The notes under the pieces are model-generated. The model was not told the origin of the DNA, searched no databases, and worked only from the letters and a program-made list of their open reading frames with translations. Shown one piece after another: positions 29,887-59,603 of a stretch of DNA of 64,000 bases; position 1 is the stretch's first letter, and each line of letters begins with the position of its first letter. The translations under genes and the position numbers were made by a program. The stretch comes from Mytilus trossulus (Eukaryota), in contig NW_026963302.1 in NCBI RefSeq assembly GCF_036588685.1, positions 2,108,001 to 2,172,000 of the forward strand, given 5' to 3'.

Positions 29887-30407
29887 TGTAAATAAGAATT
29901 TGAATAAACACTAAATATTCTAAGCTAAGAGTAAAAAAAGTAGGAATAACGATGCGGTCCTACACTTTGCGTACTTGCATATCTGAAAATAAAATAAACA
30001 AAATGACCAATAATGTAAACTGGTATAAATAGCTTCAATGAAATGGGTTCTTTCTTTGTTTTTTAATGTTGTTTCTTGTCTATCGCTCAATATTCAAAAC
30101 AATGCATTAAAATCTTACTGAATCATTGATGCTTGTTATCTAACAGAATTTTTAGATAGCAAACATTTCTAAAAATGAGTTAGTTTACAGAACTTATAAA
30201 TAATTGTCCGGAAAATTCCCCCTTTAGACTTTCTTGTCGAAACAAAAAGAGAACACACACAAAAAATATCACAATAGACTGTACTTGATTCAAAATGTTT
30301 ACAAAAGTCATGTAAATGAATTAGTATCATGTCTAGACATTTCAATACAGTAAAGTATAATTGTCTGATGCCTGAATAGAACCAAAAAATAAAATCATCG
30401 GATTTGA

Positions 30408-30814
30408 ATCATGACAGATAAGTAAGAATTGTCGGACTATCATGACAGATAAGTAAGAACTGTCGGACTATCATGATAGATTAGTAAGAACTGTCGGACT
30501 ATCATGACAGATGAGTAAGAACTGTCGGACTATCATGACAGATAAGTAAGAACTGTCGGACTATCATGATAGATAAGTAAGAACTGTCGGACTATCATGA
30601 CAGATAAGTAAGAACTGTGAGACTTTCATGCCAGATAAGTAAGAACTGTCGGATTATCATGACAGATAAGTAAGAACTGTCGGACTATCATGACAGATAA
30701 GTAAGAACTGTCGGACTATCATGACAGGTAAGAAAGAACTGTCGGACTATCATGACAGATAAGTAAGAACTGTCGGACTATCATGACAGATAAGTAAGAA
30801 TTGTCGGACTATCA
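30408..30814. repeat. 31-bp minisatellite, about 13 copies
   Basis: Unit atcatgacagataagtaagaactgtcggact in tandem, high identity. Confidence 0.95.
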
Positions 30815-33800
30815 TTAGCACAGACATTCAACCCTGTGTCTTACTCTCTTGGTATGGTTCGCGTCGATAGTCCAATATTGTTTAGTTGTGTCATAGTGCT
30901 GTTAGATCTTTGATATAATGGAATTGATACTGTATTCAATGTCTTTTTTTCTTTTTTTCCCTCAGTTTTGGTCATCCCCTTATTGTAAATTAGTCTTTGA
31001 CCTGGTCAAACAATGTAACTTACCTTCGCACTTTGTACCCTTTCCAGTCTTTGTTTTAAAACTACGTTTGTCTATATTTTGTGTTTTGATTTAAAGTGTC
31101 GATTTCTTTCAATCGTATTTATGTTAACAAAGAAATTACGACTAAATAACACAAAACATTAAACGGTATTTGAACATATTGATGTTCTATTGTTCTATTG
31201 ATTATTATCGATACAAGATTGTCACCTTTCAAGTTTGTTATTGAAATATGTATTTCATGTATGACGTACAAAAACATTTCTGTACATTTTCTTTTCTGCG
31301 TATTTTTTATATTGTTATATACTATTTTTCAACTTACAGTAAAAAAAAGGGAAAGTAAAATAAAGTAAAACCCCAGTTAAAAGGACATTAGTAAACTTCT
31401 GAATTGAAATCGATATGGAACCTAAAAGTTTAGCAAAATTCGTCTATGAACGAAAGTTGAATGCTTGTTAATTACTTCAGTAATACTGACTATTGAACTA
31501 AGGAATTATGACACAAATGTATGTCTATTTCATATTGATTGGTTAAACAAGTCCACAGAAGACGGCTACCATACAACTTTCTTCCTAATTCTTAATCTTC
31601 CCCTTGTTATTTTTAACTTGCAGGAGCATTTGAAAATATTGGTTGTAACAATAGTTCTAACTGGGAATGATTGCTTTATGTTCAGTGGCAAATATTTCAT
31701 ACTCATTCAGAACGAAAAGTCCAATAGAAAGCCGATAGTGCAAAGTCGGTTCAGATGGACATATATATAGGATAGGAATTTCGACTGTAACTGTAAAATG
31801 AGCTAGGGCATGTTGAATATGGACAGACATTTTGTATTGCAACATGTCGTATAAGGAACGTCGCACTTCCATGTGCAGACGTGATACCCTCTTTGAAATT
31901 TGCATCGGTATCTATAGGTTGGACGTGACTGTGTATTTATACATCCGAGAGATGATAATACTTAATGTATCCCTCTGATATGCTCAAAGAAAGATAACTC
32001 TATACATTATAGACTACAATTGTTCTTGAAACAATTGCAACATCATAATATAAAAAGATATATCAATGTGAACATACATGTATCAACCAAAATCCAAATG
32101 GAGTTAATGTAAGAAGCTACATGTCACAGCATGACCTTCAACAATGAGTAAAACCAAATACAGTTGCTAATTATAATTTAGGCATTTCACCCCATAAACA
32201 CATATTAGTAGCCATATTTAAAATGCATATTTATCACAAACATATATATGCACCTGTATAATTCCCCATACATAGTATTAAATTTACCTGTAAAATTTCA
32301 CTTTTGATCTTAGGTCAATAGGGGATTGATACACAAAGTAAATAAATAAACAATGGTGTTCACGTCTTTTAAAGTTGTTTGAACTCAATCTGGGTATCTT
32401 CATTTTCATTTATCTAGATTCGTCCATTACTGGCATTATATTTGTATCTTTATAAAGAATACATAATGATTGAATGAAATGATCATCATCGACCGATAAA
32501 AATAATCGTCAAGATACTACTAGTAGGCTTATAGTTTAGAATGACAGATGCATGTTTCAGAACTATTTGACGATATTCGTCGCACAGTTTATTCGCTTTA
32601 TTTACCTGAATTTCTCTGCGAACCCCAAGACCCCCTGCCCCTGGGATCCTACACTGGGATCAGATTCTGTTGATTTGAAAAGTCTATTAAGGATCATATA
32701 TTGCCTTACATAGTAGCTACGTTATCAGGAATCAGTATTACAAAACTTTACTTGTCAGCAAAACGTAGAATGCGGTTGTAATATTAAGAATTTAACCTTA
32801 CCTAGCTTTACAATTGGGTTTTTTCACCGCTTCTGGGGTACCTATATCCGGTGGTGATGCTACACTGTGGTTTCATATCAAGTACGAAGATTGAAGATAA
32901 TTGAAACCTTGTATTCCAACTGAAAACTTGTGCTAAATCTGCGGTAAAAAAAAATCCCGACAGGGGCGTAACTGTTTGGGTTTGCAGTGTGGTGAGCATA
33001 TATTTGTGTGTAACTCATTCTCCACAGCCTTATTGGATGGCTTTAGAAACAGCACATGCAATGTCCGTTAACTCCTTCATATACACAGTTTACAATCTAT
33101 GATCGTTCGAACGTGGTAACGGCGTAATTTTCCAAATGGAACTCCGTTGACAAGAGTAGTTGGTAATATGACTACATCATGCAGAAGGAAAATAGGTACA
33201 TTTAAAAATAATATTCTTCAATAATTTGGGTTAAATGAATCACAACAAGAAAAGACAGAACTAAAATATAAAAATATCGAGAACAGACACAAAACAAACT
33301 CTTAACACACAACCAAAAACAAAATGTCATAAACTTCAATATTTATCTTTAAAAGAAAGTTGTTCTAAATTATGTCTGATTCCTTTAGATACATCGTTTT
33401 TTACTCCTGGCAAGTTTACTTTCCGACAAATAGAAATAAGGAGATTGGTATGATTGACAATGAGAGAACTCTCCATCCAAGTCACAATGTGTGAAAAGTA
33501 AACACTTATACATGTATGTCAAAGTATGTTCTTCAATACGGCGCATTGGCTCACACCGAACAGAAAGCTATAACGGACCTCAATTGAGTAATTTTTAACC
33601 ATTCAACAGGAAAACAAACTGTCTAATTTATTATTATTTATAAAAAAAAAAAAGAAAAAAAGAAACACATATGAAACACATACAAAAAACCATAACAACT
33701 GATTGTAGTGATCTGTCCCTGTTCTGGTTGAAGACAGGGGCAAACCAATACAGCGGGTTTTAACGGTTAAACAGGCGCCAACCTCCCCCTAATCTGAAAC

Positions 33801-34957: not shown

Positions 34958-37920
34958 TTATTAATTAACTGGAGCTTATTTGACTAAATACGAGTAAAAC
35001 TGCCAAATCGATAATTTTGTCCTATAAGGCCAATACGGATTTTTCCGTATTGGCCCGGGTTTAGCAAGCCCAATATTAGCATATTCGATTATCTCTAGAC
35101 TAATCGGTTGAAATCCCGATAACTCTAGAGAACTACGGCTAGTGTCGTCTGACAGGAGAAAATGACAACAAAACGATGGAGCAATAGCTCTATACAAAAT
35201 ATAGATGATGCGATGGATGCGTTAGTTGAAGACTATTTTCACTACGACGATTTATCTAATAGGGAGGCAGAGTACATCAAGAGAAATCTCGCGGATGTCA
35301 ATGGGGAAGGAAATTTGATTCTGGAAGAAGTTGATTCAGCGAATTTCAACTTCCCAAATGAAATTCTGCAGGACATTGAAAATGCACAGAATCATGAGAT
35401 TGACGAATCAGACAAAGAAAATAGCTCGAGTAGCAAGAGGTTTCGCTCTGTCACTGATGAAGACACTGACTCTTTTCTAGCTTTAAGTGTTAACAAGAAC
35501 ACAAAAACTAAAACAAAGAGTGACTTGAAAGTGATGCTGGATTTTTTCATATCTGTTGGAGAAATGCGTGATTCAGTGGAAATACCTGCCAAAGACTTAG
35601 ACAGTCTGTTATCAAGATTTTTTCTTGGAGTCCTGAAGAAAAATGGTGACGAATATGAGCCTGACTCTTTATCCTCTATGTTCAACAGCTTGGATAGACA
35701 TTTGAAGGACTCAAAAAGTAGTATAAGGTACGATTATTTTCATGTAGATTATTTGATATCTGTGAGACATGTAACTCCCTTGTCTTGATATAGCATGATA
35801 GCCTTTGCATTATTCTGTCAAGCATTATGACTCGAATATTCAGTGCCAATATTTTAATTTTAGCCTTGTGTCATTTTTTTGGGTAAAAACTATATATATC
35901 ATCTGGGTCAATGTGGTTTTGATGAACTTAAGCTTGTGTACAATGAATATTCCTTGGTTTCTCTTTGCTATAAGTATAAAACATGTACATACAAAAATTA
36001 CATGTCAGATATTATGCATATCTTTTCTTTAATGTTTCAGTATTAAAAAGGATCCTGAGTTCAACCACACAAGACGGGTATTAGAAGCGAAGCGAAAGGC
36101 ATTAAAGTCATTGGGCAAGGGCAGTAAGCCAAACAGAGCTGAACCTTTGACGACTGAGGAAATCCAAATCTTGAGGGAGAAAGGCGTTATTGGAACACGT
36201 AAGTTTTAAAAAAATGTTGTATTCCAGCGTGTCAGTCAGTAACTTTTAATTACACATTTTTCTAACCTTGTGGCAAACAAATTATTTTATTTCCTTGTCG
36301 CCCTCTATCCATCCCTGATTATTAAATGGTTGTTCTAATAAAAAATGTTTAAAATACACATAAGGTCTTGAACAATGAGAGTGTCTCCAGAGGTCTTTTG
36401 CATTTTGATACAGTATTTGTCCTTTAAATACTATTTTAAGTTGGATATTTACATTAAGATACATGTATTTTAGTTAAGTTCTTTTTTTTTCTTTTTCCAG
36501 AAAACCCTGATGCATTACTGAATGCTGTGTTTTTAAATAATGCAACATACTTTGGTCTACGAGGTCGACAAGACCATGTTAACATGACATGGGGAGATGT
36601 CAAGTTAAAAGCTACATCTGATGGAAAGGAGTATTTGGAATTTAATGGTGAGATTATGTTATGATTTCCATCATTTAAATAGTTGATATTTTAAATCTTT
36701 TAGAAATCACAGAATATATACTTCTGTGGATAATGGATGTACATGTACAACAGTCCTGACAAAAGTTGGTAATTTGTGCTTTTAAGGATATTAACCATTG
36801 TTTTATATTTATCAAAACAAATCTTATTTACTATGCAATACATGTTTTTTGTTATATAAAAGTGAAAGTTTTGTACAGACAGGAAGGATAATTCTTCTTT
36901 AAATATTGACATAAGCATACTTTTTTCAGAAAGAAGCACCAAAACCCGTAGTGGAGCAAAAAGCAGGGATTTCCGGGATATTACGCCAAAGATTTTCGGG
37001 GAAGGAGGAAGTAATTGCCCTATTCATGTTTACAAGGAATACAAACGGCATAGACCTCAAGACACATTAACTGATGAACATAGATTTTATTTGAGGCCTT
37101 TAGATAATAAACATGAGGAAATATGGTACACTCGCTAAACCATAGGCAAAGATAAATTAGGTAAAATGGTAAAAAATATGGCAGAAAAAGGAGATCTTCA
37201 AGGAAGAAAGGTTAATCATTCGGGACGTAAAACTTTTGCTACCACACTACTTCAAAATGGTAGACCTGCCAATGAAGTTGCTCAATTAGGAGGCTGGAAA
37301 GGCATTAGTACCTTAACTCATTATTCAGTACCGTCTATTGAACAACAGCAACAAGCTTCTCACACAATATCTAAGGTCATGTTGCCGAACTCAGATTTAC
37401 AGACGACATCAGATTCAGAGGAACCTTGTGAACTTTCAAACTCAAATACATTAGTTCATAATAATTTAAATGCAAATGTATCAAATACAAATAATCAAAC
37501 TGCTAACAAACATGACAACCCAATGGCCATGTTTGCAGGTGCAACTATAACAGGTGGTGTTTTCAATATTAACATATACTCAGGGGAAAGAAAGAATACT
37601 ATAAACTGCAGCCAAGAGCTTTAATCTGAAAACTAGATAAAAACATGTTTTTTACTTGTTGTGTTTATTTACTGTTGATTATTTAATAAAATTGTTACTA
37701 TCTTATTGTTTTGATTAAAATCCTCAATTTTCATTGATACATATTCAAATCACTACTATTGAAGTCCTGAATGTCAGATTTTCACACTATTTTCAATTTT
37801 CATATTGGCCCGGCTAGAGTTCATATTGGACTGGTTAATTAATAAAGGTATCATTGCGTAACAATTTTCATATTGGCTTAGTTATAGGTCCGAGGGTACC
37901 ATATTGGCCTGAGGCGAAGC
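34958..37920 (+). mobile_element. Crypton-type tyrosine-recombinase element, copy 1 (nonsense mutation; terminal hairpin inverted and truncated)
   Basis: 34958-37891 matches 37959-40892; begins TTATTAATTAAC; ends in half of the terminal hairpin. Confidence 0.88.
35162..37624 (+). pseudogene. Crypton tyrosine recombinase (DUF3504-like) with premature TAA in exon 4
   Basis: Exons 35162-35727, 36041-36198, 36501-36647, 36930-37624 with GT..AG introns; TAA at 37136-37138 where copy 2 has CAA; predicts a 359-aa product. Confidence 0.88.
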
Positions 37921-38162
37921 TTCCTCCTTCCCCGAAAATTATTGACATAAGCATACTTTTATTAATTAACTGGAGCTTATTTGACTAAATACGAGTAAAA
38001 CTGCCAAATCGATAATTTTGTCCTATAAGGCCAATACGGATTTTTCCGTATTGGCCCGGGTTTAGCAAGCCCAATATTAGCATATTCGATTATCTCTAGA
38101 CTAATCGGTTGAAATCCCGATAACTCTAGAGAACTACGGCTAGTGTCGTCTGACAGGAGAAA

Positions 38163-40625
38163 ATGACAACAAAACGATGGAGCAATAGCTCTATACAAAA
38201 TATAGATGATGCGATGGATGCGTTAGTTGAAGACTATTTTCACTACGACGATTTATCTAATAGGGAGGCAGAGTACATCAAGAGAAATCTCGCGGATGTC
38301 AATGGGGAAGGAAATTTGATTCTGGAAGAAGTTGATTCAGCGAATTTCAACTTCCCAAATGAAATTCTGCAGGACATTGAAAATGCACAGAATCATGAGA
38401 TTGACGAATCAGACAAAGAAAATAGCTCGAGTAGCAAGAGGTTTCGCTCTGTCACTGATGAAGACACTGACTCTTTTCTAGCTTTAAGTGTTAACAAGAA
38501 CACAAAAACTAAAACAAAGAGTGACTTGAAAGTGATGCTGGATTTTTTCATATCTGTTGGAGAAATGCGTGATTCAGTGGAAATACCTGCCAAAGACTTA
38601 GACAGTCTGTTATCAAGATTTTTTCTTGGAGTCCTGAAGAAAAATGGTGACGAATATGAGCCTGACTCTTTATCCTCTATGTTCAACAGCTTGGATAGAC
38701 ATTTGAAGGACTCAAAAAGTAGTATAAGGTACGATTATTTTCATGTAGATTATTTGATATCTGTGAGACATGTAACTCCCTTGTCTTGATATAGCATGAT
38801 AGCCTTTGCATTATTCTGTCAAGCATTATGACTCGAATATTCAGTGCCAATATTTTAATTTTAGCCTTGTGTCATTTTTTTGGGTAAAAACTATATATAT
38901 CATCTGGGTCAATGTGGTTTTGATGAACTTAAGCTTGTGTACAATGAATATTCCTTGGTTTCTCTTTGCTATAAGTATAAAACATGTACATACAAAAATT
39001 ACATGTCAGATATTATGCATATCTTTTCTTTAATGTTTCAGTATTAAAAAGGATCCTGAGTTCAACCACACAAGACGGGTATTAGAAGCGAAGCGAAAGG
39101 CATTAAAGTCATTGGGCAAGGGCAGTAAGCCAAACAGAGCTGAACCTTTGACGACTGAGGAAATCCAAATCTTGAGGGAGAAAGGCGTTATTGGAACACG
39201 TAAGTTTTAAAAAAATGTTGTATTCCAGCGTGTCAGTCAGTAACTTTTAATTACACATTTTTCTAACCTTGTGGCAAACAAATTATTTTATTTCCTTGTC
39301 GCCCTCTATCCATCCCTGATTATTAAATGGTTGTTCTAATAAAAAATGTTTAAAATACACATAAGGTCTTGAACAATGAGAGTGTCTCCAGAGGTCTTTT
39401 GCATTTTGATACAGTATTTGTCCTTTAAATACTATTTTAAGTTGGATATTTACATTAAGATACATGTATTTTAGTTAAGTTCTTTTTTTTTCTTTTTCCA
39501 GAAAACCCTGATGCATTACTGAATGCTGTGTTTTTAAATAATGCAACATACTTTGGTCTACGAGGTCGACAAGACCATGTTAACATGACATGGGGAGATG
39601 TCAAGTTAAAAGCTACATCTGATGGAAAGGAGTATTTGGAATTTAATGGTGAGATTATGTTATGATTTCCATCATTTAAATAGTTGATATTTTAAATCTT
39701 TTAGAAATCACAGAATATATACTTCTGTGGATAATGGATGTACATGTACAACAGTCCTGACAAAAGTTGGTAATTTGTGCTTTTAAGGATATTAACCATT
39801 GTTTTATATTTATCAAAACAAATCTTATTTACTATGCAATACATGTTTTTTGTTATATAAAAGTGAAAGTTTTGTACAGACAGGAAGGATAATTCTTCTT
39901 TAAATATTGACATAAGCATACTTTTTTCAGAAAGAAGCACCAAAACCCGTAGTGGAGCAAAAAGCAGGGATTTCCGGGATATTACGCCAAAGATTTTCGG
40001 GGAAGGAGGAAGTAATTGCCCTATTCATGTTTACAAGGAATACAAACGGCATAGACCTCAAGACACATTAACTGATGAACATAGATTTTATTTGAGGCCT
40101 TTAGATAATAAACATGAGGAAATATGGTACACTCGCCAAACCATAGGCAAAGATAAATTAGGTAAAATGGTAAAAAATATGGCAGAAAAAGGAGATCTTC
40201 AAGGAAGAAAGGTTAATCATTCGGGACGTAAAACTTTTGCTACCACACTACTTCAAAATGGTAGACCTGCCAATGAAGTTGCTCAATTAGGAGGCTGGAA
40301 AGGCATTAGTACCTTAACTCATTATTCAGTACCGTCTATTGAACAACAGCAACAAGCTTCTCACACAATATCTAAGGTCATGTTGCCGAACTCAGATTTA
40401 CAGACGACATCAGATTCAGAGGAACCTTGTGAACTTTCAAACTCAAATACATTAGTTCATAATAATTTAAATGCAAATGTATCAAATACAAATAATCAAA
40501 CTGCTAACAAACATGACAACCCAATGGCCATGTTTGCAGGTGCAACTATAACAGGTGGTGTTTTCAATATTAACATATACTCAGGGGAAAGAAAGAATAC
40601 TATAAACTGCAGCCAAGAGCTTTAA
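38163..40625 (+). CDS. Crypton tyrosine recombinase, 521 aa, four exons
   Basis: Exons 38163-38728, 39042-39199, 39502-39648, 39931-40625 join in frame (1566 nt). Motifs KKNGDEYEPDSL, LEAKRKALKSLGKGSKPNRA, FGLR262GRQDH, STK295TRSG, CPIHVYKEY, NH387SGR390KT, GGW413K, TLTHY422. Confidence 0.92.
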
Positions 40626-40847
40626 TCTGAAAACTAGATAAAAACATGTTTTTTACTTGTTGTGTTTATTTACTGTTGATTATTTAATAAAATTGTTACT
40701 ATCTTATTGTTTTGATTAAAATCCTCAATTTTCATTGATACATATTCAAATCACTACTATTGAAGTCCTGAATGTCAGATTTTCACACTATTTTCAATTT
40801 TCATATTGGCCCGGCTAGAGTTCATATTGGACTGGTTAATTAATAAA

Positions 40848-40989
40848 GGTATCATTGCGTAACAATTTTCATATTGGCTTAGTTATAGGTCCTCGGGCAG
40901 CCATATTGGCCTTCGGCTTCGCCTCAGGCCAATATGGTACCCTCGGACCTATAACTAAGCCAATATGAAAATTGTTACGCAATAATACC
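40848..40989. repeat. 142-bp imperfect palindrome (terminal hairpin) of the Crypton element
   Basis: 45-bp outer stem 40848-40892/40945-40989 (1 mismatch), asymmetric bubble, 12-bp inner stem 40901-40912/40926-40937, tip TC-GGC-TTC-GCC-TC. Confidence 0.97.
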
Positions 40990-41969
40990 ATATTAATGAT
41001 TGATTTACGGTTAGTTACATAACTCCAGTCAAAACAAGTTGAACAATATTTTTTGATGCAGATGTTCATTGATGCATGAGATGTGCATAGATGTATAAGA
41101 TGTGCAGACAGCTGTGCAGGTGTAAAATGATTTTTTAACTTTAACTTTGAATAAGGCGCGGAAGATTAATTTTATCAAATTTGTTACTGTATACAATATT
41201 TTGCCATTTTTAAACTATCGCCTTAAACTCAAGTGCAACTGTTCTTCTGGTCAATATTATATTTGATAAAGTATCGCGTATCAGTGTAAAATTTTACCTT
41301 GAACTGATATGGCAGTGTTATCTATTACTTTTTACAAAACATTATTTGACAAGGTGAATGACATACTTAGTTAAACAGTTATGATGACTGCTGGCGAAAT
41401 ATAGAACACATAATTATAGTGCATTTCTAGAGAAGAATACTCAGTTTGGATAACATCACAAAATTGTAAATACGTAAGAAAACTTTATTAATTCTAATAT
41501 ACGCTTGTTTAACCCTATTAAACATGTGAATGGGTGGACGTGAAGTAAATAAGCTTTAAACTTTAGCATGGGAACTAACAAAATGGAAGGATGCATGTGT
41601 CCGACTAGACACACAGTATCGTTATGTTGATTAATATATTATAATGCGCACACGTTTTTTTTTTTGCCATGTGCTTTTATTATCTGTTGTGTTTGAAGGA
41701 CAAGTGGTTGTCAAAACCGTTAAAGTTGCAGCTATTTAATGCAATAATAATATTTTTGACTTTTTATGTGTGTGCAAAACAAATACCCTTTAAAAACAAA
41801 CGAAATTTCCATTGTCATCTGTATGCTAATTTACAGAGAGTAACTCATACAATATAGAACTTAGAATAGGAATTTTACATAATAATTATGAAACAAGGCA
41901 TGTGAACTGATTGTCGGCGTATATATTATTTTACGTCTATTTTAAAACAGTCAGGTTTTGGAAGTTGCA

Positions 41970-42236
41970 TTGATCTGTAGTACTTCTTGTATTGTTGGTA
42001 GTTTGTATGATCTATTGTATTATCTAATATATTTAGTAGTTGGTGTGATCTATTATTTTGTCTAATATTTTTGGTAGTTATTTTGATCTATATTGTATTG
42101 TTCAATATTTTTGGTAGTTAGTGTGATCAATAATATTGTTTCACATTTTGGTGGTTGTTATGCTTTATTGTACTGTCTACTATTTTTGGTAGTTGGAATG
42201 ATCGATTAAACTGTCTAAAATTTTTAGTAGTTGGAT
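41970..42236. repeat. Degenerate ~41-bp tandem repeat, resuming at 45749-45820 after the inserted transposon
   Basis: Recurring ttggtagttg..tgatctattgta.tgtctaatatt unit on both sides of the insertion. Confidence 0.75.
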
Positions 42237-50184: not shown

Positions 50185-51222
50185 ATTTATAAGTAATAGA
50201 AAAACAAGATTCACGAATCAAACCGTCTGACCAGTAAAAAAAATATTGTACTGTCATATATTATGACAATATGTGTGTACATTTACTTGACAAATACTGC
50301 AATTATGTATGAATTTACTTAACAGCTAATATGCATTTTATACTATTTTTTAATTCGTGACGTATATAAATTGTATGCTTGATTCCATGCCATAAGAGTG
50401 TATATTTGTGTGTGTGTATGTCATTAAATGTTCATTACTGCTCCTTTAAAAAGCAAACGCATTATTTCATATTTTCATTAAACACAATTTGTGCATTGGA
50501 CTCTGTCAATTTTAATAACTACTTTTGGTGCCGGAATAACAAGTTTTGTTCACTCGGTATCCCTTAGATTTTGGGAGATTTGGCTAGCCATAAAACTAGG
50601 CTTAACCAACCATTTTTTTTTTTAGAATGAGCTGTGATCATGTCGGGAATGTGGAAGTCCGTCTCTATGTATTTTGGCGTTTGTTTTTGTTGCAGTTCAG
50701 TGTTTCTATTGTTCCGTTGTGTTCTACTTAAAGTTGATGCGTTTCCATCGTGTTTGGTTGATTTGCAATCCGGATTTGTTTTCGCTTTATCGATTTATGA
50801 CTATTTATCAGCGGTATATTTTTTTCTTTTTACGGGGACATCATTTATATTTGTATAAAAATCTTTGTTGTGAAGTTGTTCGAAAAGAAAATATAATGGT
50901 TTTCGCCTTCTCTACGTTACAGGTTTTTCGCCTTGTTTATGCCACTCTTCAAAATACGTTTTATATTTTACATGTATACAAATTGTTTATGTACCGAAAT
51001 TGTCTTTTTTTGTAGACTGCATGCTAATCCCTTGGTGATTATATATTTGGCTGTTGATGTGTATATACACTCAACATTTATATGTATTTATACATTTATA
51101 TGGCATGCAACTTCTCTGCAATTACCGATAAAGTTTGAAATAAACATACAACTAATTTTTCAGGAATATTAAGTATGAACAAAAGTTGGTAGTGTGAACA
51201 CTAATAACTTTACCCTGTGATC

Positions 51223-54184
51223 ATGGCAGATCCTAGCTTCAGGCAATCAGTCGGTGGACGGCGTTTACTCGTTTTACTCTTGCTACTGATAACAATATCA
51301 CTAGTAATTGCAATAATAGTGATAGTTATTAATACTCATAGCAATCGAAAGCATCAACCTACCTGTGGTCAAAAAGAGAAAGGACAGTATGGCCATATTG
51401 ATCTAACGGAATCCGACAATCCTTCTGTTTTTCGCGATTTGACTTCAAAAGAAATTGAAGCTTTAATGAATTATTTACATAGGCAACATAGTCTTAATAT
51501 AGTCAAAGCAGCGGACATGAAAGTAAATTCTAGTTATGTTTACTCCTGCGAAATGCATCTACCTAGCAAGAGCTCAGCCATTGATCATCTTGACAATAAT
51601 GCGAAAAAGCCTCCAAGGGAAGCGCATGTCATTATCTTCAGAGGAGATAAACAAAAACCAGACATTGAAGAAATAATCGTTGGTCCTTTACCCAATCCAA
51701 CTGGTCATAGACCTGTTCCACATAAAAGGAAGTCAATTCCTTTTATATATCGGCCCACGACCGGACCGGAACATATCGCGGTAATAGATATGCTAAATGT
51801 AAAAATCGACAACCTTCTTGGAACAATGCTTGAAGAGTTGTACGGGGGACGACTTTTAAATTGTGATAGTAAATGCTTAATCATTCGGTACATAACACCG
51901 GTAGCGTCTACACTGTCTGGGGAAAGAAGACGTAAAACATGGTATTGGGTGTCGCAATTTGCTGAATATTACATCCTACATCCTCTGGATTTTGCTGTAT
52001 TGGTAGACATGGACGTAACGAATAATACAATAGAAAACATATGGTTTAATGGACAACTTCATGACAATCTATTGGGTGTTTTAAATAATTACAGTGCAAA
52101 TAAGGGTTCTATTACTAAAATTCAGTTTCCAAATGTGAACACTGATAGTTTTTCTGCAGCGAAACAACGCGGCACACCACCAATTAGTCCTCCTTTAAGA
52201 AATCCAGTACAAGTCTCACCTGATGGAAAAAGATATAATGTGAACGATCGTCATGTTAATTATATGTCCTGGGAATTTGATTTCCGGATGTCGACAACAA
52301 AAGGTCCACAAATATATGATTTAAAATTCAAGAAAGAAAGGATAGCATATGAAATAGGCTTACAAGACATTGCCGTCTTTTATTCAGGATACAAACCCAT
52401 GCAAGCTATGGCTAATTATTTAGATAGTGTAGGGTTACTCGGATCCCGTGCACAAGGTTTAGTACCTGGTGTCGATTGTCCAAAGGACGCAACATTTGTA
52501 GGGACGACGTTGCTGGTGGAGTCCGATGGTCCTTTTTCGTATGAAAACGTATTCTGTCTGTTTGAATATAATACAGGCATGCCATTACGGAGACACCACT
52601 CCTACTCATTTAATTATGGTAGGTTTTATGAAGGAATGGAAACGACAGTATTGGTTTTGAGAACAATTATCGTTATTATCAACTATGACTATATTATCGA
52701 TTTCATATTGTATCCAAATGGTGCAGTGCAAGTAAAAGCCGTTTCCACTGGCTACGTATCAGGTACATTTTATACTAAAAATGAAACAAAATACAGTTTT
52801 GAACTTCATGAGAATTTGGCAGCTAACATACACCATCATATGTTTAGTTTTAAAGCCGATTTAGATATAAAAGGAAATGAAAATAGATTTGCGACTGTTG
52901 ACATTGAAACGGAAGATTTACCGAATAAATTTTCAAAAAACAAGGATTCAAGATTAATTCAACATAAATTTTCTTCAACTCTTAAGAAAACGGAGAAGGA
53001 AGCTTCGTATAAATTTGATTTTGAAACTCCAAAATATTTACTTCTTTACAAAGAAGATGACAAGACAAGGAAATTTTACAAAAAGAGTAAAAGTTATCGT
53101 ATACTGAACATGGGAATGTCGAAACAAATCCTACCAGAGGGCAAAGGTAACGAACCTAGTATAAGTTGGGCTAGATATCAAGTTGCAGTGACCAAATATA
53201 AAGACTCAGAACCCACCAGTAGTTCTATATACTCTATACTAGATGCTGAAGACCCAGTTGTACATTTTCAGAACTTTATTGATGATAATGAATCAGTTGT
53301 TGATGAGGTAAATGTATAAATAACCAATAAGTCATTAAAGATTTCTCAAGGTTCAAATTTTCATTGAAAAAAAGAAGATGAAAGAAACACTTGAACACTC
53401 GGCCGGGTCAAACTATTTCTATCAATGTCTGAACATGATATAACAAATACCAATTGTGTTTGGAACATCACTTTCAACCACAATCAACAATATAGAAGAT
53501 AACAAAAAGTAAGTACACAATGTGTCATGTTGTACAAACAAAATGAAAAATAAAAACACACTTTATAAGATTATGTACGGTGTCTGAAAGCAGACCTTGG
53601 CTTATGTATGTAACTTAAAGTTACTGATATGCAGTATCCGTCATACTCTAAAGTCGTTGGCTGTATTCCACAGTACATTTCAAACTGAAATGGCATCAAC
53701 AATACAGGAAGACAATGATTAACTTATGCAAACGATGCTTAAAATAAAACCATTTAAAACAAAAACAGACAAAAGAAACATTTTAAGTAAGCAAATTAAT
53801 GTATAATATAAAATTTAAAAAAAAGTGTTTATAGACTGAGATTTTTTATATTTAAAGGTGACTTTGTATCTTATATGTTTGTAGGATTTAGTAGCATGGA
53901 TCACTATGGGAGTTCAACATATTCCACACACTGAAGACTTGCCAATTACCACTACCCCGGGGATGGAAGTAAGCTTTTATCTATTACCATACAACTATTT
54001 TGATGAAGATCCAGCAATATCATCATTGAATGCTGTTCGTATAGAACCAACAAACAAGCTGAAGCATAAGACATCTATAAAAATAAACCGATATGGTGTT
54101 GGGCAAAATTTTGAATGTCTGCCAGAGGAAGACAAATACGATGAAGAAATTAAGAAAAATCCTTCTATAATCCTTGATGCTTGA
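51223..54184 (+). CDS. Copper/TPQ amine oxidase (AOC-like), paralog B, 794 aa
   Basis: Exons 51223-53307 and 53885-54184, same intron position as paralog A; TM anchor, NYLD, NYDY, HHH, HIPH motifs. Confidence 0.95.
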
Positions 54185-54957: not shown

Positions 54958-56016
54958 TTATGATGGTTTACACCCATCTACAGATGATTTTGAATATCTG
55001 GATTTAGTCGACATATTTGATGCTTTCGAAAGTCTTCCAGACAATGAACCTGTTTCTGTCGAGTTCTTTATGGGAGTGCGTGTTTCGGGTCTTTTACTGA
55101 TCTGGGTTGTCGGACGACTGTTTATCAGTGGAAGTGTATAATTATCCTTTTTGATCTTTTGTTCACTCGAAAGATGGTTAAATGGATCAAGCGTTGTTGT
55201 TAATGTTCCTAAAGTTGTCAAATAAGATTCTTGATTTTTCGGATGGATATATAAAATATTTATATCTTTAAAAGAATGTATTAGTACTTTGATTTGTTTT
55301 CTTTCTTCAGTGGTGGACGATTTCAAATTATGAAGTGTAATAAAAACTTGGCTATTGGACCCGTATTCATTTACAAAATCTAGCTCCGTTTTATGCTCAT
55401 TAACTTTTTCGATCAACCCCGAAATCTTTTCCTCCTGCTTTTCAATGTTTGACGATTTCAAAAGATGCACAGTTGATAATTCTGATAGCAATGCATGCTC
55501 TAATGCTTCAAGGCGATCAATAATGTTTTGCTTAATTGCCGCAATAGATTTCTGTATATCGTCCTTTTGCTTGTCTAGTCTTTTTAAATTTTCGGTTCGG
55601 TTCTGTGTTATTTTTTTCAATAATTGAATATCTTCTTCCATATCTTTAGTCAGTGTCTGTAACATAGGCGATTGTTTGATCCCCTTAGCTACAGTATCTA
55701 ATGACTGCATTCTATCACACCCTCGGTGTTTTTCCGTCATGCATGATCGACAACACAGGGCATCATGGTATGCACAGTACAGATCTACAATTAAATCAGA
55801 GTGCAAAGGACAATACTTTTGAGCGGTTAAATTTGAGGATACCTCTGGCGGCATATCTTCATTTTTCTTTAGTGTATGAGACAGAGTAATTTTATTTATT
55901 CGATGCGCTTTATTACAGTTCTGGCATAATGATTCCATACAGTCACAACACCAGCTTACTGCTTCTGATGAAGTCTTTTCTCTTTGACAAGGTTCACAAA
56001 ACGGAATTGAAGACAT
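54958..56016 (-). CDS. RING-less B-box1/B-box2/coiled-coil TRIM-like protein with Ser/Thr/Lys-rich tail (352 aa)
   Basis: CEPC..WCCDCMESLCQNCNKAH..H and CPLH..YCAYHDALCCRSCMTEKHRGC; coiled coil; acceptor tttttgtag 9 nt before the ATG. Confidence 0.88.
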   Translation of the reverse strand: MSSIPFCEPCQREKTSSEAVSWCCDCMESLCQNCNKAHRINKITLSHTLKKNEDMPPEVSSNLTAQKYCPLHSDLIVDLYCAYHDALCCRSCMTEKHRGCDRMQSLDTVAKGIKQSPMLQTLTKDMEEDIQLLKKITQNRTENLKRLDKQKDDIQKSIAAIKQNIIDRLEALEHALLSELSTVHLLKSSNIEKQEEKISGLIEKVNEHKTELDFVNEYGSNSQVFITLHNLKSSTTEERKQIKVLIHSFKDINILYIHPKNQESYLTTLGTLTTTLDPFNHLSSEQKIKKDNYTLPLINSRPTTQISKRPETRTPIKNSTETGSLSGRLSKASNMSTKSRYSKSSVDGCKPS

Positions 56017-59000
56017 AGTTATTATCTACAAAAAAAAGTTAGCATGAGAAATTCATGTACTGTACATATGAATAACATAATGATGGTCGATTACAGGAAA
56101 TTATTATGAAGCCTTCAAACTTGAAAAAAAGTATCAGTTCCTTGATCCAAAACTAACAATTTTGCTCTAATTTTTTTTTCAATGAAGCATTAGTCAACTT
56201 CGAGTTTCCCGAACTATGATTAAAATGAGCAACAGGGTCTGGCGTCAGAAAACATGTTTAACCCCGCCATATTATATACATGTAGATTCCCGTCGCTAAT
56301 CAGGAGCCTTTATTTCATTGGTTGTCGTTTGTTGCTGTATATATATATGCGTTTTGTTTAATTATACTTTTTCACTTTTTTGGTCTTTTGGAAAATGTTG
56401 TTTGTGCTGTTTTTAGACCTTTCTACAACGAAATTTGTTTTACATGCACACGTATAAAAATTGCGGTTTTTATCCAACGCAATCATAGGTTTGAACGTAT
56501 TTTCAATTTTGACTCATATTTAATTATGATAACGGTTATTAACTTGTCTCAAACAGAACCACTTTCTTTTTTAATTTTTAAAACCATTTGACTTCTATTC
56601 AGTGAGTGTAATTCAGCTAATTAATTCTTTAACACATAAAGATACAGAGGAGGCTTCAGAAAGATACTGCCTCAGCAATGCCAAATTAGTACTTTAATCA
56701 TAGAACCCATTGCTTGACTTCATATTGTCAAAGATAATATAAGTTCTATAGGGCAAAGTAAATGATTATGTACAAGGGGAAATGTTCGTTTTAACACTTT
56801 GTTGACTTAATATGCAGTTATTATAAAGTTAGTTGTGAGCATACCTCATGAGACGATCTTGCTGTTCAGTGACCGTTCATATGCACCTTTTACAGGAAGT
56901 TCGTTCGGAAACTTCCTATAAAGTTTACGCATTTTTACATTATATTATTAGGGCATCCGAAGCCATAAATTGAGATTCCTTATGATCAACTAAAGTTGTC
57001 ATTACATTTACACATTGCACCAATAGAACGAATTACAACCACGATTTTCCTTATCTTTTTACGCATATAATGTGAAAATATTGAATAAACAAAGAATTCA
57101 TATATACTTACATACAATGCTTTATGCATGTGCAGAATTAGTATTTTTATACTATGTCGTTAAAAGTAAATCGTATGTTGTTTTCAAAACGATATTTAAT
57201 GGAACAATGACTTTTTGAAAGAGAATATCTAACTACACATATAATTATAACAATAAGACTAACCGATCCGAAAGATCAAACCGACAACAGTAATTTAAAT
57301 ATCTTAATCAGTAAAACAATTGCCATTATATTTTCACATTAGCATATACGTATATATACAATCAATTGCAAAAGTGTGTTAGAAATCTTACAAACATGTC
57401 AGTTGCTTCATTCTGTGATGGAAGCTTTGATAGATAATAATCGAAATTTGACCAGATAAGTTAATTGTTTTAAAGGTATTTATCAAGGTTCGTTTCCGTC
57501 ATCTTTTCTTTCAGTTATTGATATCAGACTACATGCATATTAAATTTCATAAAGCATGGCCCAATACAAACCATAACACCTAATAGCAAATAGTTCGATA
57601 CGTATTATTAATAACGATAAAATTTTACTAACAAAATTAGTACTAAAAATCTCCCAAGAGTTGTTGCAAGGGTTCTTTAGTGTGCAGAGAGTGTGTCACT
57701 GTAAAGTAATTATACACAAGAAATTGAATTTAATTTCCAAATCTGAACAGACGTGGCTGCGTATTTGTACATTTCACTCAATGAAACGGAAGCTCATTTT
57801 CTCGTACACAATCAATTTATTATTAAAAATATATACCATTTTTCTGTTTCCTTTGATGTTCTAGCACAGCTTGTGTAGTTTTAAAAATAAATAATAATCT
57901 TAAACCGAGCGTGCAATTACAGAATAAACATTTTCAACAAGCAAGTGTCAAATTTTAACACAACTTTTATATTTAGGCGTGCGTTTATACTATAAGAAGA
58001 GAGATAACTTTTGTTTAAATAAATACCAAAAACGTAATATATATTTCTTTGACAGGCCCCTAGTATTGTTTGGGGATAACCTTGAGTTTGATAACATTTT
58101 TCAAATATCACATTAGGATCAAGTTGCGGATCCCAGATTTCTTTATAAGGAGGACATAAAATGGATACTTTTTAGACAATTTTGAACGATTTTATGCTGA
58201 TTATTCAATCCTAAAAAAGCCTATGCCTAAGAGGGGTGTCTGTTTTGCTGTTAGGGATGTACAAATACTCGGCAATCTGATCGGAATTCTTTTCTTTGGC
58301 CAGGTTAAACCCGGTATAGATTTATTTTGGTCATCTCCATGGAATTATCCCAATCAAGAAGCAAAGTCCATGCTGAAGTAGGTGTTTATTTTGCTGTTCG
58401 GTATTGCAGGTACTTGTTATTTTCCTTGACTAGACTAAGTATACATTTGTACCTTATTAATAAGGTATATTGGGGGGGGGGGGGGGGGGATCTGAGACAA
58501 GTGCCGGTGTTCGAGATGTACAAATTTTTAGTCACATCTGATCGGAATACGTTTCTTCGTATATAAGGAACGTGTCACGGATACTGCGTGTAACTGTGTT
58601 GTATCAGCTCATTTTGGAGATCAAAAACATTTTAAAGGCTTAATTGCCTCAACCCTACATACTGCCTTTTCCCATTGGCAGTCTTATTTGCACACCGACA
58701 TCACAGATGATCCACATCTTAACCTCACCTAACACCTTTTTTTTTTGGGGGGGGGGGGGGGGATTTGATTTCCCACATGACGACAAACGGTTAAATCTTT
58801 CCATAATTGTAGTGATTAAAACTCTTTATCCTGCAATTGGGTGTCCTATTATACAGATACAGCCCTACAGATATCGCTATGATATGAGTATTGTATAAAC
58901 CTGTGTGACCTCAGAACGTGTATTGCAGTCGCATTCCAATGGCGTATCAATTGCGAATTAACGATTTCTTAAATACGTTCTGTTTGTTTTCAAACATTTC

Positions 59001-59460
59001 TTTAGAGTAATAAGAATCACACCAATTTTCTGATTACATACACACACGAACATCAGTCTTTTCTACGATGACAACTATCCATTTCAAAACCTGAATGTGT
59101 ATTATTGTGTAACAAAAACAACCATGATCAACCATGTCAATTTCAGCATGCATGTTTAGTGAATGTCGAGTCTGAAGCGAGGGACAATTCGTACAATTCT
59201 GTTTCAAATTGGACAATGTTTTGTTATTTGTTTCTATACTGTTGAAATTAGTTGTTATGTTAAAATAGATAGTTATTCACCTTGAGCGATGTATTATTGT
59301 TGACCATTCGAGATTCTTTTTATGCGAAACTCGTCTTCAGCTGAATGTGTGCTTACTGTATCGTATTACTACACGGGCCTCAAGGGATTTCATATCGAAA
59401 ATAATTGCAAACCATTTGTTTTGTGTCTTTCAAACACAAATGATATTTACAGGATAAAGA

Positions 59461-59603
59461 TAACAACTGTTTAGTGTCTTTAAATATCAGCTGTATTTGT
59501 ACTCGGCACGAAACAGGTGTAATAGCTCGCTAAAAGCTCGCATACACCTTGTTTCTTAGCCTCTTACAAATGCAGCTGATTTAAAGACACTAAACAGTTA
59601 TTA
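59461..59603. repeat. 143-bp imperfect palindrome, candidate non-autonomous Crypton-type hairpin
   Basis: Arms aactgtttagtgtctttaa-atcagctgtatttgta-ggc-gaaaca-ggtgta pair with tacacc-tgtttc-gcc-tacaaatgcagctgat-ttaaagacactaaacagtt; tip GC-TC-GCT-AAA-AGC-TC-GC. Confidence 0.85.

Follow-up and report, generated by a model that had tools for sequence, protein, structure and literature searches.

A mismatched palindrome at the 3′ end of a CryptonA-like transposon in Mytilus trossulus as a candidate folded recombination site

The 64,000-nucleotide stretch of Mytilus trossulus DNA analyzed here (contig NW_026963302.1, positions 2,108,001 to 2,172,000; hereafter the window) carries a head-to-tail pair of mobile element copies (34958 to 37910 and 37959 to 40912, 99.8% identical). 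An imperfect palindrome at 40848 to 40989 lies at the 3′ end of this ∼3035-bp tyrosine-recombinase element, with its last base 3 nt short of the terminus (40992); the element's features in the window are as follows.

34958–34969: 5′-terminal 12-mer, copy 1
37847–37920, + strand: half of a hairpin, belonging to tandem copy 1 and interrupted 2 nt beyond the loop
37921–37958, + strand: 38-nt filler between copies 1 and 2, made of two 19-nt element snippets
37959–37970, + strand: 5′-terminal 12-mer TTATTAATTAAC, copy 2; start of homology for at least 14 copies and break point of run X1 contigs
38026–38058: small perfect palindrome of two inverted TATTGGCC motifs (GGCCAATACGG-ATTTTT-CCGTATTGGCC), 5′ subterminal, ∼70 nt from the 5′ end
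38145–40702, + strand: tyrosine-recombinase gene, transcribed and spliced (RNA contigs, GT..AG joints, PF00589, homologues)
38727–39039 and 39648–39929: introns of the recombinase gene (GT..AG)
40092–40625, + strand: catalytic C-terminal exon ORF
40800–40832, + strand: two direct motif copies TTCATATTGG(C/A)C, one exact and one variant, upstream of the hairpin
40835–40846, + strand: pre-hairpin 12-mer GTTAATTAATAA, the 3′ copy of the terminal inverted repeat, displaced inward
40848–40989, both strands: 142-nt imperfect palindrome with four TATTGGCY motifs, two per arm
40990–40992, + strand: last element bases ATA; flanks diverge past 40992

The two ends are defined by copy homology, which begins at 37959 (TTATTAATTAAC) and ends at 40992 (...ACCATA), and by short-read DNA contigs of run X1, which break at the same two positions. 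At least 14 further copies lie in the 1.3-Gb eukaryotic genome, with 94 to 99% identity over the 5′-end stretch that was compared. Copies have TA or TTA on both sides, and these flanks show no clear 4- to 6-bp direct repeat or target site duplication. Within the 3035-bp unit we find recombinase exons only, with no reverse transcriptase and no other transposase. Searched against Pfam exon by exon, not as a joined coding sequence, the C-terminal exon ORF scores 32.7 bits for Phage_integrase (PF00589), above the cut-off of 27.1, and also shows a trace of DUF3504; the N-terminal ORF gives a weak QRICH1 match. The C-terminal exon reads HSGRK...GGWKG...THY, the catalytic motif set of tyrosine recombinases, and relatives of the recombinase with 40 to 62% identity in Mytilus, Mactra, and Tegillarca carry PF12012 together with PF00589. 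These domain matches and bivalve homologues uphold the original prediction that the palindrome belongs to a Crypton-type transposon; judged by its sequence, the element is a CryptonA-like tyrosine-recombinase transposon that is expressed and recently active.

One RNA contig set lacks 39200 to 39501 in addition to the two introns. RNA contigs stop near 40680 to 40702, before the hairpin, and there is no RNA depth over 40797 to 41018; with contigs stopping near 40700, the hairpin as part of the mRNA is unsupported. An AATAAA at 40842 to 40847 overlaps the pre-hairpin 12-mer, and the RNA contigs end (∼40685 to 40702) by an upstream AATAAA at 40683 to 40688. Elsewhere in the window are a 31-bp tandem array of about 18 units (30316 to 30877), a short run of 38- to 40-bp repeats (42010 to 42224), and two long ORFs of host genes near the elements, which by eye resemble a copper amine oxidase exon (51217 to 53319, + strand) and a B-box/coiled-coil (TRIM-like) protein (54958 to 56016, − strand). 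Sequencing runs of four organism labels (runs X1 to X14) contain 0.87 to 0.89 of the element's sampled words, and mollusc and marine metagenomes likewise contain 0.87 to 0.89 of them. This suggests that either the species concerned are very closely related or the element has spread among them recently; a scan of viral contigs for relatives of the element found nothing.

The outer arms of the palindrome (40848 to 40897 and 40940 to 40989) are 94% complementary. As single-stranded DNA, positions 40848 to 40989 fold at −63.6 kcal/mol on the + strand and −65.9 kcal/mol on the − strand, compared with about −13 ± 2.8 kcal/mol for 200 shuffles (z = −17.5 and −18.8, respectively), none of which (0/200) reaches the same energy. 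The fold leaves unpaired positions 40853, 40893–94, 40898–99(–900), 40913–14, 40918–20 (TTC), 40924–25, 40939, and 40943–44, which make up five irregularities.

40853, + strand: C opposite A40984, a C·A mismatch on the + strand and a T·G wobble on the − strand
40893–40894, + strand: outer TC opposite TC at 40943–44, a CGAG/CGAG block on the − strand
40898–40900, + strand: CAG opposite TA at 40938–39, an asymmetric internal loop that becomes one T·G wobble plus one extra base on the − strand
40913–40914, + strand: inner TC opposite TC at 40924–25
40918–40920, + strand: loop TTC, which is GAA on the − strand, within GCGAAGC

The coordinates, the letters, both TC/TC mismatches, the CAG/TA bulge, and the minus-strand tip (GGC-GAA-GCC) are all as originally described, and the irregularity at 40853/40984 is added here. 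It is present in all 11 family-1 copies (those of the element itself) and shifted by one position in family 2, a set of non-autonomous relatives. The outer TC/TC pair occurs in 8 of 11 copies of family 1 and 10 of 14 of family 2 and is part of both consensus sequences; the inner pair occurs in every family-1 copy (11/11) and in the family-2 consensus. The loop sits inside a 23-nt core (40909 to 40931) that is identical between families 1 and 2. An assembly artefact is ruled out: identical palindrome letters recur at no fewer than 12 other genomic loci, and the tip is spanned without differences by independent contigs built from the short reads of another run.

All five irregularities favor the − strand, because that is where the GA/GA pairs, the T·G wobbles, and the GAA loop stand. 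The tandem mismatches read C-GA-G/C-GA-G and T-GA-G/C-GA-A on this strand, and the chemistry that the original prediction invoked for them is established: the d(GCGAAGC) mini-hairpin has a melting temperature of 76.5°C (PMC13037366), and tandem sheared pairs in a pyrimidine-GA-purine context (C-GA-G) form a stable "CGAG block" (PMC10085684). The difference between strands is 2.3 to 2.6 of about 64 kcal/mol in families 1 and 2 (family 2 folded as the majority hairpin sequence of its copies), under a standard nearest-neighbor model in which neither sheared GA pairs nor the GAA loop are given terms of their own.

Family 2 comprises elements of 0.8 to 1.5 kb (about 20 diverged matches, 73 to 79% identity; a metagenome scan yielded one more copy). 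Its members and the autonomous element have in common only the region of the 5′ 12-mer, including TTATTAATTAAC itself, and the 3′ block of 12-mer, hairpin, and ATA, making the hairpin the only long sequence that the non-autonomous relatives keep. In an alignment of 27 hairpins, a 59-pair structure has 94% of its cells paired, and sliding the partner column lowers this to 31 to 43%; its covariation score is 0.234, against reference values of 0.03 to 0.07. Fourteen stem pairs are changed on both sides, at least six of them outside the TATTGGCY motif, and these compensatory changes separate essentially two lineages. Old individual hairpin copies decay. Both consensus sequences keep the TC/TC pairs, the loop, and the C·A/T·G near the stem base, and the internal loop stays in place (CAG/TA in family 1, CAG/CAA in family 2).

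Several copies have composite or shortened structures. Two ∼860-bp chimeras, L014 (C1:72251895–72252753) and L015 (C4:853500–854364), join a family-1 5′ end, a family-2-like body with a partial family-2 left arm, and a complete family-1 hairpin, in that order. In three other copies (L018, L048, and L049), part of the hairpin is deleted between an inner and an outer TATTGG motif, the result that slippage between these repeats would give.

A further repeat in the window has a parallel layout in unrelated sequence.

58824–59602: family 3 repeat, ∼790 bp, non-autonomous
58824–58836, + strand: family 3 5′-terminal 13-mer, complementary to 59447–59459
59461–59603: family 3 terminal hairpin, 143 nt, fold z about −11

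The sequence of family 3 is unrelated to families 1 and 2; its architecture is taken from one complete copy. A first look at the genome gave more than 3000 candidates, and 40 of these were scored. Read on the minus strand from the tip outward, the inner modules are a triloop, a 3-bp stem, a GA/GA pair (GCGAGC versus GCGAGC), and a stem of ∼13 bp; farther out come an internal loop, then GGC:GCC and a purine loop (AGA/GAG), and finally a stem of ∼40 bp that has a T·G near its base. This copy also has one C·A on the minus strand. The tip is TTT or TAAAA, not GAA, and so the mini-hairpin itself is not conserved. Hairpin length, module order, polarity, and the split repeat described below are nevertheless alike across families 1 to 3, without sequence similarity in family 3, and the purine/wobble side always lies on the strand antisense to the recombinase gene, a polarity common to the three families. 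The proposal that relatives would show covarying stems with fixed GA/GA positions was thus borne out: mismatch positions are kept across families, both in family 2 and in the unrelated family 3.

The terminal inverted repeat of the element is split by the palindrome. In all three families, the 5′-terminal 12 to 13 nt are complementary to the 12 to 13 nt directly before the hairpin; in copy 2, 37959 to 37970 is the reverse complement of 40835 to 40846, and this pre-hairpin 12-mer (GTTAATTAATAA) is conserved in families 1, 1b, and 2. In the integrated element, the 3′ copy of the repeat therefore lies 147 bp inside the end, and folding out of the palindrome would bring it almost to the end. Because the 5′ end is complementary to the pre-hairpin segment, joined ends would form a hairpin of ∼170 nt: computationally, joining extends the stem to a palindrome of this length and places the exchange point ATA|TTATTAATTAAC at the hairpin base, on one side only. 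No end-to-end junction was found in four sequencing runs, three of them searched as assembled contigs and the raw one for 8 reads, a depth at which rare circles are undetectable. The TATTGGCY motif matches 14 times in the window against 3.5 expected, and 12 of the 14 matches fall at the termini of element copies 1 and 2. The motif arrangement recurs in family 2, 5′ cluster included, with a variant of its own (CTGTATTGGCC) at all sites; motifs changed in concert between families look like binding sites that may be co-evolving with their protein.

Individual copies record transfer of sequence between the arms. In five (L009, L013, L038, L039, and L051), one left-arm TC has become GA, leaving the site perfectly paired; L009 is also internally deleted, and the outer mismatch is corrected in two young copies of family 1. 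In three others (L019, which is copy 1 in the window, L020, and L050), the inner left arm is rewritten as the complement of the right arm, and these end at the tip or within a few bases of it. The half hairpin of copy 1 (37847 to 37920) is an example: its outer part matches the left arm, while its inner part and tip are right-arm complement. All eight transfer events (8/8) rewrite the left arm, and the combination of arm transfer with breaks at the tip is evidence of fold-back processing of the palindrome in vivo. Between copy 1, broken at the tip, and copy 2, which starts at its exact 5′ end, lies the filler at 37921 to 37958, the first 19 nt of which are the reverse complement of 39994 to 40012 and the next 19 nt a copy of 39905 to 39923; filler built of element snippets is what we take to be a mark of templated-insertion end joining. 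The mismatches are often corrected in single copies yet kept in both consensus sequences, a contrast which argues that they have probably been retained by selection in the transposing lineage. Regular flip/flop isomerism is ruled out, since none of the 27 complete hairpins is in the inverted (flop) orientation; this also excludes a parvovirus-like hairpin-transfer cycle. The inverted inner arm is confined to the three truncated copies.

Several systems offer precedents for folded or palindromic ends. In integrons, the folded bottom strand of attC alone is recombined, and replication resolves the product. The attP(+) site of CTXφ is likewise made for XerCD by a folded single strand, in which stem mismatches direct the strand exchanged. 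Short subterminal hairpins of IS200/IS605 and Helitrons are read by HUH nucleases, while in parvovirus terminal hairpins (e.g., the asymmetric bubble of the MVM left end) small asymmetries decide the side that is processed and flip and flop are equal. Telomere resolvases (TelK, ResT) and the enzymes of loxP/FRT have the tyrosine-recombinase fold and use palindromic sites of 30 to 60 bp with cleavage around the dyad.

Among these, integron attC (PMC5027507, PMC3053210) has the following in common with the present end: an imperfect palindrome at the 3′ end of a mobile unit with a tyrosine-family recombinase, structure rather than sequence conserved between families, unpaired features skewed to one strand (an all-purine skew on the − strand here), and a similar size (57 to 141 bp for attC, 142 nt here). 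Nucleotide skew in unpaired features aids strand choice in attC, and the first bases of an integron cassette (the rest of R′) pair with R″ before the hairpin, with the R box of the bottom strand, in its folded form, as the place of exchange (PMC5027507). Here, too, the start of the unit pairs with the pre-hairpin segment (37959–37970 with 40835–40846, and 58824–58836 with 59447–59459 in family 3). The differences are also clear. The host is eukaryotic and the element has its own spliced recombinase gene with bivalve homologues, with no IntI and no bacterial cassette array. The GTTRRRY/RYYYAAC core is absent, as GTTAATT fails RRR because the sixth base of GTTAATTAATAA, T, is not a purine. Tandem GA pairs, G·T wobbles, and a GAA loop create the asymmetry, a role that extrahelical G/T bases have in attC, and the long stem is highly ordered, with repeated motifs. 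Use of a single strand is known from integrons and is proposed here.

Cryptons have been described without terminal inverted or long repeats, with direct repeats of only 4 to 6 bp (PMC3212892), and reports on animal Cryptons found "no terminal repeats" (PMC3212892; PMC13465315). Canonical Cryptons, as Goodwin et al. (2003) are represented in PMC3212892, resemble the present element in coding for a recombinase only, in having introns and a DUF3504-related catalytic domain, and in a presumed circular intermediate and AT-rich short matches between end and flank; unlike them, the present element has a split 12-bp inverted repeat and a 142-bp structured terminal palindrome. We found no description in the literature of a Crypton end with a hairpin, palindrome, or cruciform. 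The other systems are more distant. IS200/IS605 elements and Helitrons (and Replitrons, PMC10288648) have a hairpin a few bases from one end and one-strand reading in common with it, but there is no HUH/Rep gene here, and the ends are TTATTAATTAAC...ACCATA rather than the 5′-TC...CTRR-3′ of Helitrons. CTXφ attP(+) differs in its single-stranded phage genome, its use of host recombinases, and its far shorter forked hairpin, and parvovirus termini differ in enzyme class and in the absence of inverted complete hairpins here (0/27). Tip-broken and arm-transferred copies would fit hairpin-capped ends such as telomere resolvases produce, but the normal exchange point lies about 74 nt from the dyad, unlike that of the resolvases or of loxP/FRT.

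We conclude that the hairpin is very probably a cis-acting 3′-terminal recombination structure of a CryptonA-like transposon. Whether the palindrome must fold in order to act we regard as an evenly balanced question, and that a single strand is the substrate of the recombinase we consider somewhat less probable than that. The original prediction proposed an attC-like, strand-specific folded recombination site or an origin; the terminal cis element and the attC layout hold up, whereas the origin, for which the GCGAAGC motif alone speaks, does not. The attC analogy is closer than first proposed, because the split terminal repeat puts the exchange point at the base of the extended hairpin. In the mechanism we envisage, joined ends (an excised circle) or a single strand would form one hairpin of ∼170 nt, in which the outer 12-bp stem would take the role of the attC R box, the hairpin base that of the L box, and a small AG/ATA loop that of the central spacer, with exchange at ATA|TTATTAATTAAC, on one side of the base only. 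The recombinase would most likely recognize the folded form, either the bottom-strand hairpin or a cruciform with a four-way junction at its base, and sheared GA pairs, G·T wobbles, and the GAA tip would bias folding and recognition toward the bottom strand, thereby fixing the orientation of the reaction.

Taken as a whole, a folded end structure that is recognized with a bottom-strand bias is the best explanation we can offer, and we give it an even chance. Several observations count against it: the two strands fold almost equally in the standard model; arm-to-arm conversion could keep the arms alike without selection for pairing; the outer mismatch would be dispensable if the two corrected young family-1 copies transposed in that state; the comparison covers three independent lineages only, with family 3 represented by one complete copy; and four sequencing runs (three assembled, one raw with 8 reads) are without an end-to-end joint. 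The main rival, which we consider rather unlikely, is a site used only as ordinary double-stranded DNA. The palindrome would then be an inverted array of binding motifs for the recombinase or a host factor, making up an accessory, intasome-like region, and its asymmetric positions would merely give direction, as the spacers of loxP and FRT do, while mechanical conversion keeps the arms alike. Such a site would explain why TATTGGCY is clustered at both ends and altered in concert between families, why five copies have a left arm converted to right-arm complement, and why the strands differ so little in the standard energy model, and classical tyrosine recombinases do act on duplex sites (PMC3212892). 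It fits less well with at least six compensatory pairs outside the motifs, with mismatches that conversion should erase and both family consensuses nevertheless retain, with the recurrence of GA/GA at equal distances from the tip in the unrelated family 3, and with a 3′ terminal repeat that only a folded-out palindrome would bring closer than 147 bp to the end.

The remaining explanations are much less probable. A role at the RNA level or in host regulation, with the hairpin either giving rise to small RNAs from a transcript or acting as a terminator or insulator for the recombinase gene, is improbable: an AATAAA overlaps the pre-hairpin 12-mer and the long hairpins weakly match miRNA precursors, yet RNA contigs end at 40680 to 40702 with no depth over 40797 to 41018, gene-less non-autonomous elements retain the hairpin, and the Rfam matches are far under threshold. 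No RNA family in Rfam scores above threshold, the best match being a miRNA precursor at 59 bits against a gathering threshold of 200, and a scan for bacterial-type terminators and promoters gave nothing meaningful. More improbable still is a complementary-strand origin, at which the hairpin would prime or position second-strand synthesis on a single-stranded circle, as G4-type phage origins do. We know of no eukaryotic nuclear primase that needs a mini-hairpin signal, the element has no replication protein, and the family 3 tip, TTT or TAAAA, does not conserve the mini-hairpin; on the other side, the fact that 8/8 transfers rewrite the left arm would fit synthesis from the 3′ end, and GCGAAGC-type mini-hairpins occur at phage single-strand origins (PMC13037366). 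Least credible of all is that the palindrome has no function and is a chance palindrome or foreign fold-back insertion carried at the element end, its mismatches due to decay. Palindromes arise readily by template switching and old copies do decay, but this one is terminal in every copy and retained in non-autonomous families, with 14 compensatory pairs and a 23-nt core shared unchanged by families 1 and 2, and the unrelated family 3 has a parallel architecture.

To our knowledge, no Crypton has been studied biochemically, and animal Cryptons have been described without terminal repeats, so that the recombination sites of Cryptons are unknown. The structured end described here is a new variant of Crypton ends and suggests a testable attC-like mechanism. 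Defined and conserved cis elements (the split 12-bp repeat and the 142-bp palindrome) occur together with an intact, expressed recombinase and many near-identical copies, which makes the mechanism of a Crypton directly testable. We tentatively propose that this Crypton lineage and its abundant non-autonomous relatives may transpose by structure-specific recombination of a folded strand or a cruciform at joined ends, and, with the same reserve, that sheared GA pairs, G·T wobbles, and the loop may choose the strand, making the process a possible eukaryotic counterpart of integron attC recombination. If the folded-strand reading is true, structure-specific single-strand recombination, so far the province of integrons and CTXφ, would extend to animal transposons and would explain the very abundant hairpin-ended short repeats of bivalve genomes.
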